DNA of 64,000 nucleotides, taken from NCBI GenBank assembly GCA_002269645.1, contig NIVC01000944.1:124001-188000 (forward strand), given 5' to 3'. A model generated the notes under the pieces. The model was given only the letters and a program-made list of their open reading frames with translations, made no database searches and was not told the origin of the DNA. Positions 1,485-63,537 of the stretch are shown here, piece after piece; position 1 is the first letter of the stretch; each line of letters opens with the position of its first letter. The DNA is from Macrostomum lignano. Its lineage: Eukaryota. Made by a program: the position numbers and the translations under genes.

Positions 1485-3751
1485 ATAACTCAACACGGCT
1501 CTGCAACGAGAGCAACAGCTTTGCATACAAGGGCTCGTGCTTCACGTTTTTCCCGGGTGTGGCCACTTTCGAGTCAGCGCAGAGCAGCTGCGCTCTCAGA
1601 GGCGGAAACCTGGCGAGCTTTTCAACTCAGGGGCATCAAGAGCTTTTCCTCACGGTGTTGTCCAGTGAGATTTTTATAGCCGACAGCTTAATGAGCTGAG
1701 CAATTATGCACCAGGTACAGACTAAGCTTCTTTGTTATTTCAGGCATTTACTCGATGACGAACTCGTCCTATTGGTGGCTCGGCTTCACCGATCCCAAGA
1801 GACAAAAGACTCCCATGTGGCTCAACGGGCACGTCTACTCTCTCAGCGAGTTTTCTCCTCAAAGCAACAGGTTCCTGATGTTTCGAAACACAACCTTCGA
1901 AGTTGTCGATCAACCTGTCTCGTTACAATTGGTGGAAAAAGATTTTACAACGTCAGAATGGAACTTTACTGTTTATAAAAATGGTTTCTATTATGAACTG
2001 AAAGAGGAGACGGAGTGGGTCCAACCCGTTGCCAGCTACGTCTGCGAGACCGCCGAGAAGAACCCTGGCTGCCTGAAGATCACCCGCGCTGCAAACTTCA
2101 CGCAGCGGTCCAGCTTCATGAGCCTCTCCATGTGCCGCTACCTCTGCTTCTCCGCTGGCTTTGCCTACTCGGCCGTGATGCAGCAGAACTGCTCCTGCCT
2201 CAGCAGCCTCTCCGCAGCTGAGTACGGCATTGAGGACACCAGGCTGCTGGACTATTGCAATGCGCCGTGTCCGGGAAATCCCGACCAGTTCTGCGGCCGG
2301 TCAGATGAGCAGTACTACTCTGTCCACAGCACAGGTGAGTGCAGGTTCATCACAACCGATTTTGCTCCTTCGCGGCATGCCAAGCATGAGTGCGCAACCC
2401 ATTGAATTGCAGAGGAGCTGCCCACTGCTGAAAACTGCTCAGAGCTGTACGCAAACGACATTCACCTGCATTTCCGATACAAACTGTACAACTCCAGCAG
2501 TGAGAGCACTTACTTCATGGACTGCGGCTTTACCGGTGAGTTGGAATGAAATTCAGTTCGAATGCAGTTCAGTTCGAATGCAGTTCAGTTCGAATGCAGT
2601 TCAGTTCGAATGCAGTTCAGTTCGAATGCAGTTCAGTTCGAATGCAGTTCAGTTCGAATGCAGTTCAGTTCGAATGCAGTTCAGTTCGAATGCAGTTCAG
2701 TTCGAATGCAGTTCAGTTCGAATGCAGTTCAGTTCGAATGCAGTTCAGTTCGAATGCAGTTCAGTTCGAATGCAGTTCAGTTCGAATGCAGTTCAGTTCG
2801 AATGCAGTTCAGTTCGAATGCAGTTCAGTTCGAATGCAGTTCAGTTCGAATGCAGTTCAGTTCCAATGCAGTTCAGTTCCAATGCAATTTGAGCATAACA
2901 AAGCAACAAACAAATTTTTCAGATCAGAGTGCTTGCGCCGATGGCTTTTACGCCTTCAAAGGCCTTTGCTACAGCACCTTCTTCAGCAATCTGAGGCTGG
3001 AGGAGGGCGCCAGGTCCGAATGCGCGGCCAAGAACAGCTTTCTCGTGACGTTTCCCAGCAGGGAGCATTACGACTTTACAGTGAAGCTGACGACCCTGCT
3101 GCCGTATCACAGTGCAAAGAGCCCCAGGTGGCTGCTGGGCTATGAAAAGCTGGACGATGACCTGGCGCAGTCACCAGTGCTCAGCGCAATGGGCGATTTC
3201 GTCTACTTTGCCGGCATGCCGGGAGTCATAGAGCAGAGCGGCTATGAGAAAGGCAGGTTCGCTCGCTTCTACATGATCAACGGCTCTGTCGCTGCCAGCA
3301 ATTCAAGCAGTTTGGAGTTCGCTTCGATTTGCGTTCAGAGCTCAGGTAACTGCCGCAATTGCATCTGCAGTGAAAAGATTTGATCTGCTCAAATCGTTTA
3401 GAAGCTGCTGTAAAATTGCTTTTAAATTTTGAGCATCAAGACACTCATCGGTAATACTCTCGCATTTCACTTCGCCCTCAGTGTTCGCAGCGTGCGGCCC
3501 GAACTCCTCAGCCAGCGAGTCCGTGGGACTGCAGGGCCCGCCCGGCTACCAGATCCCGCAGCAGTGCCTGCAGCTCTGCCGCTCAGCCGGCTTTGAGTTC
3601 GCCGGCCTGCAGCCCGGCAGTTGCAGCTGCGGCTCAGCCCTGCCCAATGGGTCGGCCATCGGCGAAGTCGGCACCTGCCACCAGAGCCGGTGCCCAGGAA
3701 TGAAGTTCTCCTACTGCGGATCCGACACCAGAGTGGCCTGGTACCACACTG
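1485..3751 (+). CDS. Gene A exons: CTLD - WSC - fibrinogen-N-like two-Cys module - CTLD - WSC
   Basis: CTLD motifs YKGSCFTF..AQSSCALRGGNLAS..WWLGF and FKGLCYS..CAAKNSFLVT..WLLG. WSC pattern CRYLCFSAGFAYSAVMQQNCSC..CNAPCPGNPDQFCG..SV and CLQLCRSAGFEFAGLQPGSCSCG..C.G....CG. Two-Cys module NCSELYAN..YKLY..MDCG. Confidence 0.85.
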
Positions 3752-61726: not shown

Positions 61727-63537
61727 ATGACGGGGTCTGGTGAGATTTCACTCCGGCTTGGCTCCGTCCCTACAATCCTGCTTCTAGTGCTGGTGACGGC
61801 TACCGGAGCTCTGGCCGACGAAGGTAGAATCAGAGATTCTTTTTAAAGTTTTCTGTCTGAGGCCAAATTTCTTTTGCAGGACTTTTGCAAATATTTTATG
61901 CTTTCACGCTTCCTACAGCAATAGCTTTAACTCACTTTATGTTAGCTTTGAGACCGTTTTTGAAAGTCTGAAAATTAAACTCGAATAGCCAGAGGCTTCT
62001 TGCTCTGCAGATCCGATTCTCCCGCCTTGTAACCTTGGGGAGATTCTGTCAAGGATGGAGTCTTTTGTCACGCATGCTTGCAATCCGTGCAATTTCGACT
62101 GACTTCTGCCGTCCATTAAGCTTTGCTGTGTATTTGAGTCAATAGATTTTAACCAAAAACCATCAACTGCGAAAACACTAAAATCGTCACATGTCATTCT
62201 AACTTTAACTTTAAGGTGCCTCGTGTGCGAACTTCAGCACAGACCCGTCACAGCACTCTGTCTTCATGAACAGCTCTGACGGGACGCTAAATGGTCCAGA
62301 CAGCCAGGTAAACGTCACTTGCAGTGCCGGCGTTGGCGCCTATTTCGCGGATAGCAACGAGTCCAACTGGATGCAGCTGGTCTGCGCAAACGGCAGCTGG
62401 ACGCAGACTTTCTTCATCGCCAACGACTCACGGCCGGAAACGTGGCAGACAGCGGAAGTCCTTGGCGATGCTGAGCCCGTCCTTCCTAACTGCATCGGTG
62501 AGATATGCTACATCATTTTTTGGTGCGACTTGAATCAGCCGAGCTGCACAGAAAATGATTGGTTCACTATCAACAAAGCATTAAGGTTCCTGTGTCAAAG
62601 TGAATGCTTTGCAATCAAATTTGTCGCTAAACACTGCAGCATTCTACCCAGCATATATGTACGGCTCGTAGTACGTTGTTGCGAAAACGGAACTGTATTT
62701 TTTTTAATTTCGCAGCCCACGTTTGCCAAGAACCGATCATATCTGCAAACCTGACTCAAGTATCGACTTCAAAGGGTCTCTTCGAGCAGGACTTTTCCTA
62801 CGGGGCCCAGCTGGTGTACCAGTGCCCAACTCGGCGCGGCTTCAGATTTCAAGGCACTGGCAACGGAAGCTCGATGAACTCGGCCAACATGACGTGCGGC
62901 TTCGGCGGTTGGTCAGTGGTAATGTCGGGTCCTTCTGGCTCAGACACCATCGACAACACCACTGTGCCACGGTTGCTTGATTGCGAAGGTAGACAATTTT
63001 TAGAGAGATTCTTACTCTTTCCCTTTAATCATTATATTATGAATGACTTTCACCTCAAAACAGAATCTACACCTCAAGATAATCATTCAGTTTTCCTTTC
63101 TGGAACCGCCGTCGTCAAAATATTTTTCAAGCTAAGCTTTCCACACATTTAAGAGGCTTATAGCAGTGATTGCGAATGATGATGATTTTAAAGCTTGAAT
63201 TGCATGCGCAAGACATTTATCGTCTCTTCTCTAACTGCACTCTGTCTGAAACTTCAAGGTGTCCGGTGCGTAAACTTCAGCTCTGATCCGACGCAACACC
63301 TGATTTTCGTGAGCAGCTCCGATGGGACGCTGAATGCACCTGGAAGCCAGGTGAATGTCACCTGCAGTACTGGCGTGGGCACCTACTTTGCTGACACCAA
63401 CGAGTCCAACTGGATGCAGCTGGACTGCGACAGCGGCTGGAGGCTGACGTACTTTGTCGCTAACGACACCCGACCGAAAAGGCGGCTGCCAACGAAGTTC
63501 CTGAATTCTGCAGCGCCTGTCCTGCCTGATTGCATGG
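61727..63537 (+). CDS. Gene C (3'-partial): third paralog; signal peptide plus sushi-like W-Z-W modules
   Basis: Exons 61727-61823 (MTGSGEISLRLGSVPTILLLVLVTATGALADE), 62216-62497, 62716-62988 and 63259-63537. Lengths 282 and 273 match B exons 2 and 3, with clear protein similarity. Confidence 0.88.

Follow-up and report, generated by a model that had tools for sequence, protein, structure and literature searches.

Polycystin-1 (PKD1) and the sea-urchin REJ ectodomains are among the few animal proteins whose large extracellular regions are known to carry both a WSC and a C-type lectin domain. A 64,000-nucleotide stretch of the Macrostomum lignano genome (GenBank assembly GCA_002269645.1, contig NIVC01000944.1, positions 124,001 to 188,000), here called the window and numbered from its first base, carries three paralogous genes, A, B, and C, head-to-tail on the + strand. 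Their predicted products are giant mosaics with a signal peptide, WSC domains, C-type lectin-like domains (CTLDs), and complement control protein (CCP, or sushi) modules, which supports an initial annotation that had proposed a tandem family of at least three such paralogs. Relative to polycystin-1 and REJ, the WSC domain (seven copies) and CTLD (five copies) of gene B are repeated and flanked by CCP arrays. A Pfam search with all 3,551 amino acids (aa) of the B product (E value, ≤1) identified no leucine-rich repeat, PKD repeat, REJ, or GPS domain, and no membrane region was found, as the modelled 3,551 aa contain no internal hydrophobic segment.

The tandem CTLDs are shared with the mannose-receptor family (MRC1, PLA2R, DEC-205, and FcRY), whose members ranked highest when the CTLD profile built from this locus was searched against PDB (E value, 4e−25 to 1.5e−21) and several of whose CTLDs likewise lack sugar-binding motifs. 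That family is defined by ricin-B, fibronectin type II (FnII), 8 to 10 CTLDs, and a transmembrane (TM) tail and has neither WSC nor CCP modules, whereas B gave no match to ricin or FnII, no TM tail was found, and WSC and CCP are present instead. Selectins and the G3 region of lecticans (aggrecan and versican) resemble the locus in that a CTLD precedes CCP modules, each module has its own exon, and the introns are phase 1. Against the selectin layout (CTLD-EGF-CCPn-TM), however, no EGF match and no TM segment were found in B, and 14 CCP modules follow a WSC-rich core. Among proteins with long runs of CCP modules, CR1, CR2, and factor H were strongly matched by the C-terminal array profile (E value, 2.7e−37 to 1.7e−22); these proteins, SVEP1, and CSMD have no WSC/CTLD core, and Pfam detected no CUB, VWA, EGF, or pentraxin domain here. 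The initial annotation had recognized no named family in this architecture, and that judgment stands: selectin, mannose-receptor, and polycystin-1 features (EGF, FnII, ricin, PKD, and REJ in Pfam) are missing, and the likeness to SVEP1, factor H, or CSMD is limited to the long CCP array. As judged from sequence, none of the tested family definitions fits beyond the individual domains.

Two giant secreted adhesive mosaics, Mlig-ap1 (5,407 aa) and Mlig-ap2 (14,794 aa), have been described from M. lignano; Mlig-ap1 includes a C-type lectin domain, and no homologue of either protein is found beyond flatworms (PMC6410801). The domains given for them are vWD, C8, TIL, EGF, TSP-1, LDL, and Lys/Arg-rich, with WSC or sushi unmentioned (PMC6410801). 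The prostate-limited M. lignano transcript RNA815_80.4 has two WSC domains (PMC4490696), and Mlig-pro46 and several other seminal-fluid candidates are similar to WSCD2 (PMC6953679). Compared by description only, RNA815_80.4 and Mlig-pro46 have the organism and the WSC type in common with the locus, whereas CTLD or CCP is mentioned for neither. The locus adds a new architecture to the familiar invertebrate extracellular lectin mosaics, a kind common in invertebrate genomes.

Gene models and module order

The analysis started from a stop-to-stop frame listing, followed by blastn and tblastx comparisons of one half of the window with the other. A codon table trained on the tblastx islands was used with generic splice-site matrices to chain exons by dynamic programming, and doubtful junctions were curated against the paralog. 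Gene A (1485..20282) has 24 exons and encodes 1,710 aa, with its 5′ part beyond the start of the window and its 3′ end not found. Gene B runs from an ATG at 23495 to 53871, with 44 exons and 3,551 aa (coding sequence of 10,654 nt, with no stop codons); its 3′ terminal exon was not found. Gene C, from an ATG at 61727 to 63537, has 4 exons and 310 aa and extends past the window end. Introns are GT-AG throughout all gene models; 40 of the 43 B introns are phase 1, as are the exon ends in 41/44 exons of B and 22/24 of A. Same-phase alternatives in B (donor at 38256, 38343, or 38370; acceptor at 40400 or 40553; optional exon 46555-46599) give a length of ∼3,460 to 3,570 aa plus the missing end. The three head-to-tail genes with a common exon-intron structure that had been proposed between 1485 and 63537 were recovered by the independent exon chain, of which these positions are the exact first and last exon edges, and by collinearity and the phase-1 GT-AG introns. 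The single long spliced open reading frame (ORF) claimed for B was also recovered, uninterrupted over 44 exons, but at 3,551 rather than ∼3,750 aa.

The window has a G+C content of 43 to 60%, abundant satellites, and no long bacterial-type ORFs. Several candidate coding segments were rejected. Draft exons at 32126-32221, 46555-46599, 48098-48190, and 59044-59078, among others, had neither paralog support nor the module pattern and were dropped. The sequence MSSLTLLLL upstream of 1485, considered as a signal peptide and ATG start for A, is an intron polypyrimidine tract, and a 274-aa Cys-rich ORF (19997-20818) is mostly a (GTCT)104 microsatellite.

From its N terminus, the B product comprises a signal peptide, six four-Cys modules, seven WSC domains interleaved with five CTLDs, two-Cys linkers, and one ∼110-aa module without a database match, and 14 CCP modules. 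The core repeat unit is a WSC domain followed by a two-Cys linker and a CTLD. These counts reproduce those of the initial annotation (7 WSC, 5 CTLD, 5 linkers, 1 module labelled discoidin, 14 C-terminal CCP, and 6 N-terminal modules), although some of its labels did not hold, as described below. Nearly all modules correspond to phase-1/phase-1 exons, and the family thus grew by exon and module duplication.

WSC domains were assessed with Pfam PF01822, a profile of ∼82 positions and eight cysteines with a gathering score of 27.8 bits. In B, WSC1 (37153..37500) matched in two stretches within the WSC1+WSC2 piece (41.0 bits); WSC2, with a two-Cys linker (37960..38370, ending at one of the three alternative donors), scored 28.9 bits; WSC4 (41499..41777) scored 36.3 bits; and WSC5, which shares the second exon of CTLD3 (42046-42249 and 42584-43105), scored 38.9 bits. 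WSC1+WSC2, WSC4, and WSC5 thus lie over the gathering score, and WSC3 (39288..39605; 19.3 bits) and WSC6 (43930..44199; 20.7 bits) lie under it. In A, WSC5 occupies the 3′ half of the second of two exons shared with CTLD3 (1485-1664 and 1744-2334; WSC, 41.2 bits), which aligned by tblastx to B 42096-43116, and WSC6 (3482..3751) aligned to B 43992-44165.

WSC7 is split in both genes by CTLD5. The N-half and C-half lie at 45259-45447 and 46688-46819 in B, where Pfam matched WSC in two stretches, and at 6298-6465 and 11626-11763 among the curated exons of A. Between them, in the same arrangement in both genes, stand three phase-1 CTLD exons (45518-45742, 46182-46232, and 46309-46455 in B; 6562-6783, 8873-8923, and 9000-9149 in A). 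Joined in silico, the halves gave one full WSC match over profile positions 1 to 80 of 82, at 34.0 bits for A and 31.8 bits for B, which places WSC7 over the gathering score too. The ratio of nonsynonymous to synonymous divergence (dN/dS) between A and B is low in the two halves (0.21 and 0.07). Either a CTLD would be nested in the WSC hairpin, or the three exons would be cassette exons whose skipping gives a plain WSC domain.

For CTLDs, Pfam PF00059 (Lectin_C; ≥22.6 bits) was combined with the CTLD cysteine framework. CTLD2 of B, encoded together with a linker copy (40400..41317, from acceptor 40400 or 40553), scored 26.7 bits, and CTLD3 of B scored 27.3 bits. CTLD4 of B (43403..43810) gave weaker matches to Lectin_C (E value, 0.021) and UL45 (E value, 0.0014); it and CTLD4 of A (2923..3345) are included in a profile of eight CTLD copies from A and B, of which five matched Pfam singly at an E value of ≤1. 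CTLD1 of B (38444-38629 and 38717-39004), on which Pfam was silent at that threshold, was recognizable through this profile only, as was CTLD5. Against PDB, the profile gave E values from 4e−25 (multi-CTLD receptors) to 1e−11 (single CTLDs). When exon 40402-41316 (305 aa) was modelled with AlphaFold2 (AF2) from its own sequence alone, the pLDDT was 30.8 and the model was not used.

Two modules lost the names first given to them. The supposed fibrinogen-N-like module is a ∼40-aa two-Cys linker, of which B has about five, and a profile of seven copies matched fibrinogen neither in PDB nor in Pfam at an E value of ≤10. Linkers of B at 41868..41981 and 43178..43300 were placed by alignment, and the A linker at 2413..2535 shares 71% aa identity with the latter (dN/dS, 0.14). 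The single discoidin-like module of B is a ∼110-aa segment that follows a linker over four exons (44309-44438, 44505-44593, 44686-44771, and 44895-45054, curated against A); no F5_F8_type_C or discoidin match was found in Pfam or PDB. As a 155-aa piece it matched no Pfam family at an E value of ≤1, and a profile of the A and B copies matched nothing in PDB at an E value of ≤10. The four exons of the A copy (4407-4536, 4615-4703, 5654-5739, and 5856-6009) are all present in the UniProt entry A0A1I8IWD3, discussed below.

The first exons of B (23495..23573; phase-1 donor gtaaac) and C (61727..61823; phase-1 donor) are homologous, and each carries an ATG and encodes a signal-peptide-like product, MTDSSQLSKLASVLLILMASSALA/SE in B and MTGSGEISLRLGSVPTILLLVLVTATGALA/DE in C, ending ALA/SE and ALA/DE, respectively (the slash marks the boundary). 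The sole hydrophobic stretch of B is residues 5 to 31 (Kyte-Doolittle maximum, 1.72). Six four-Cys/Trp modules that aligned as a set follow in B (23997-24278, 24740-25012, 27255-27536, 32913-33197, 33806-34123, and 35634-35826 joined to 36486-36553), and the three of C (62216-62497, 62716-62988, and 63259-63537) share 49 to 66% aa identity with B modules 1 to 3. They had been counted as CCP modules, and their phase-1 exons and C..C..C..W..C spacing are compatible with that pattern. The searches did not confirm the CCP label itself: Pfam gave no match to Sushi, a profile of these modules placed factor H, CR1, and MCP at the top of PDB with weak E values of 0.45 to 2, and hhalign against the C-terminal CCP profile gave an E value of 0.0075 but a probability of 5%. 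AF2 predicted an all-beta fold for B module 1 (8-row alignment) with a low pLDDT of 60.7, and a Foldseek search with this low-confidence model found no match at an E value of ≤0.001. Separately, B modules 1 and 3 (24035-24280 versus 27293-27538) share 88.6% DNA identity (synonymous divergence [dS], 0.41) and are nearer each other than either is to the copies in gene C, which suggests that the module 1+2 pair was duplicated or converted within B at a later date.

C-terminal CCP modules were defined by Pfam PF00084 (Sushi; gathering score, 20.7 bits) and the C1..C2..C3..W..C4 pattern. The B array matched at 56.1 bits (three stretches) and 28.1 bits, and 13 of the 24 single modules of A and B matched at an E value of ≤0.1; against PDB, the array profile had its best E value (2.7e−37) with CR1. 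The 14 B exons are 46895-47119, 47205-47465, 47564-47797, 48415-48642, 48848-49084, 49209-49427, 50542-50787, 50946-51164, 51271-51489, 51886-52143, 52303-52524, 52677-52892, 53144-53410, and 53647-53871. The 10 of A, from the CCP alignment, are 13177-13401, 13530-13787, 14234-14455, 14544-14789, 15052-15270, 15841-16098, 16372-16590, 16680-16895, 17357-17623, and 20058-20282, so that B has four extra CCP exons. A recurring subtype lacks cysteines C2 and C4, and ∼5 of the 14 B modules keep only C1 and C3. Reading through the last donor as a 3′ end would add 16 residues in B, but in A it enters the (GTCT)104 microsatellite, and this solution was rejected.

Paralog divergence and public records

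By tblastx, A 1511-20287 is collinear with B 42096-53876 as exon-sized islands of 40 to 87% protein identity separated by unalignable sequence, and the modules at 24.0 to 27.5 kb in B recur at 62.2 to 63.5 kb in C. Exon by exon, the copies of the tandem family share 13 to 82% aa identity. Between A and B, dS values are 0.5 to 2.3, often saturated; dN/dS is 0.07 to 0.49 in the 19 of 24 exons with an estimable dS, the other five being saturated. Between B and C, dN/dS is 0.19 to 0.30. These values indicate that the exons of A and B are real coding sequence and old duplicates, both kept by purifying selection. The description of the family as expanding does not agree with this pattern, in which the A/B duplication is old rather than recent (dS of ∼1 or higher) and purifying selection acts on it.

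One exon departs from the general divergence. WSC5 of A and B (2028-2345 versus 42799-43116) shares 86% aa and 81% DNA identity, against ∼50% aa identity in its neighbours, and the WSC5-bearing exon has a dS of only 0.49 versus 1 to 2 in other exons, a contrast that suggests either gene conversion acting locally or a constraint of unusual strength.

When one exon profile (196 positions) was searched exhaustively against 1.84 billion representative sequences, the sole close match was UniRef100_A0A1I8IWD3 (E value, 7e−91), a 779-aa UniProt fragment named WSC domain-containing protein from M. lignano itself. The other 16 matches covered the WSC part only, and none had both CTLD and WSC over the 196 positions searched. 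As far as this one profile reaches, the proposal that the family is lineage specific is borne out. Homologue searches with the CTLD2 exon, B residues 1616 to 2056, and CCP10-14 of A returned no match, but because they missed even A0A1I8IWD3, they carry no weight on the presence of relatives. The fragment is 100% identical to the gene A model over 11 exons (1485 to 9149), where it ends, except for three splice choices. In exon 1744-2334, 19 residues are frame-shifted, destroying the C-terminal YVCE of the CTLD; within 2413-3345, the public model jumps from inside the preceding linker exon into CTLD4, losing the exon's end and the N-terminal third of the domain; and the conserved 51-nt exon 8873-8923 is skipped. 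The entry is a fragment model and would gain from re-annotation against the paralog-supported reading. A literature search on this locus, on A0A1I8IWD3, and on WSC in flatworms found no paper.

Repeats and mobile elements in the window

A truncated LTR (long terminal repeat) retrotransposon (28028-31225) lies in the 5.4-kb intron 4 of B. Its direct LTRs of ∼319 bp are 96.5% identical, and the element has ends of the form T(G/T)T...CA and an apparent 5-bp target duplication (GTGAC). The 681-aa ORF (28866-30911, − strand) encodes gag, aspartyl protease, and reverse transcriptase, with RNase H and integrase absent, and had no match in the recorded contigs. The insertion interrupts a 30/33/63-bp satellite, which extends beyond the element at either end (27638-28025 and 31225-31947). 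At 55196-55800 (− strand), in the B-C spacer, short open frames carry an ...ADVLSRQ-like motif, which we take to resemble Ty3/gypsy polyproteins; two of these frames had no Pfam match, and the region may be retroelement debris.

Four copies of a tRNA-derived short interspersed nuclear element (SINE), 77 to 85% identical, were identified at 16936-17111 (+), 33322-33632 (+), 45887-46170 (+), and 60434-60710 (−), with a head reading GTAGCCTAGTGGTTAGAGCG...GGTTCGATTC. Introns of A and B hold three of them, and the B-C spacer holds the fourth; ARAGORN (tRNA) and Rfam scans gave no hits at all and thus called none of the four.

Tandem repeats make up ∼10 kb of the window, mostly within introns of A, B, and C, and produce long false ORFs on either strand. 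Arrays occur at 1-418, 2552-2886, 3777-4398, 6907-8740, 9220-11444, 12274-12991, 20292-20708, 21397-22328, 25266-25997, 49473-50383, 56219-56516, and 60791-61397, with examples including (TTAC)155, (GTCT)104, 183 copies of a 10-bp unit, and 2.2 kb of a 22/44-bp satellite. The (GTCT)n array begins 10 bases 3′ of the last identified exon of A. A 29/30-bp satellite in the last intron of A (18799-19026) is also found, inverted and ∼73 to 75% identical, in intron 3 of B (25266-25997).

Possible roles of the family

The family is read here, with a probability of roughly 0.45, as an exported multivalent extracellular binding scaffold with a role in surface or gland secretion. This role is the first choice because M. 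lignano has giant secreted lectin mosaics (PMC6410801) and WSC proteins in prostate secretions (PMC4490696 and PMC6953679). The B product, with 166 Cys residues and 100 N-glycosylation sequons, would be a very large, Cys-rich, heavily N-glycosylated extracellular mosaic. Its WSC/CTLD core could offer many weak contacts to glycans or proteins, and the CCP arrays could hold the core outward, serving as long, semi-rigid spacers or as rods on which proteins dock. Such a protein might cross-link or coat glycan-rich extracellular material, whether surface mucus or glycocalyx, a gland secretion, or matrix, with the paralogs supplying differing binding surfaces.

Several observations weigh against this scaffold. 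The Pfam thresholds are missed by three copies each of WSC and CTLD. When the alignment was read by eye, the EPN/QPD and WND motifs were absent from all eight aligned CTLD copies, and because of this, classical calcium-dependent C-type sugar binding by the CTLDs is unlikely; the glycan recognition first suggested for the family is not supported by these CTLDs. In A and B alike, a strong phase-1 donor (TG/gtaagt) closes the last CCP exon, so at least one further exon is expected, and blastn and tblastx comparisons between the downstream regions (20283-23450 and 53872-61700) identified no convincing stop-bearing terminal exon for either gene. A membrane anchor on the missing C terminus is possible. 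Secretion, as claimed in the initial annotation, is likely given the N-terminal signal peptide, although no C-terminal exon was found to bear it out. Lastly, with all junctions in phase 1, a read-through from A into the second exon of B would remain in frame.

A narrower form of the scaffold is unlikely in all its particulars. Here the proteins would be flatworm-specific secreted cross-linking lectins in which composite WSC-linker-CTLD units, of a type not known from other proteins, stand in series, including a CTLD in a WSC hairpin whose two lectin folds form one combined site, and which organise surface mucus or a gland secretion.

The missing 3′ ends bear on whether the proteins are instead anchored in the membrane as receptors or adhesion molecules, much like selectins or mannose receptors, with a TM segment and cytoplasmic tail on a short, fast-evolving terminal exon. 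Such an exon would fit the open phase-1 donors, the run of CCP modules after CTLDs recalls the selectin layout, and the multi-CTLD receptors FcRY, DEC-205, and PLA2R head the PDB matches to the CTLD profile. Scans of both downstream regions for phase-1 acceptor-to-stop frames, however, found no convincing hydrophobic reading frame with coding potential, and no conservation between the tails of A and B was found, which leaves this the strongest of the alternatives but an improbable one.

Somewhat lower still stands a humoral role in pattern recognition or complement-like control, with a lectin core that would detect microbial glycans, beta-glucan among them, and CCP arrays that would control effectors or bring them in. 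WSC, CTLD, and CCP are domain types known from such proteins, and the tandem copies have diverged to the per-exon identities given above. Selection speaks otherwise, with dN/dS below 0.5 in every estimable exon and no sign of diversification; Pfam matched B to no effector domain, whether thioester, MACPF, protease, or another, and the CTLD sugar motifs are absent.

An origin in reproductive glands (prostate and seminal fluid, or shell or cement gland) is a slighter prospect than the immune role. It draws on the prostate-limited WSC transcript RNA815_80.4 (PMC4490696) and on Mlig-pro46 and the other WSCD2-like candidates (PMC6953679), but domain content is given only for RNA815_80.4 (two WSC) and no sequence tie to the locus was made. 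Reproductive proteins are, moreover, often fast-evolving, whereas the estimable exons here show dN/dS values of 0.07 to 0.49.

A single transcription unit, in which the last exon of A splices to the second exon of B, and B to C, with the signal-peptide exons as alternative first exons, is the least credible arrangement: the phase-1 junctions would keep such joins in frame and a stop-bearing exon was found for neither A nor B, but two homologous ATG exons with classical signal-peptide features lie just 5′ of the repeated N-terminal block, the 3.2-kb and 7.9-kb gaps are full of satellites, SINE copies, and (in the B-C spacer) possible retroelement debris, and the module order begins anew at each unit. 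Three separate genes are likely, given the two signal-peptide exons and the restart of module order in each unit.

The value of the family described here lies mainly in annotation, as the public 779-aa fragment belongs to a tandem family whose proteins reach at least 3,500 aa and follow a defined module grammar. M. lignano is an existing source of biomimetic adhesive proteins. If the function were confirmed, the family would provide a natural case of one lectin fold nested in another and a candidate matrix, mucus, or recognition component in a flatworm model open to RNAi and transgenesis.

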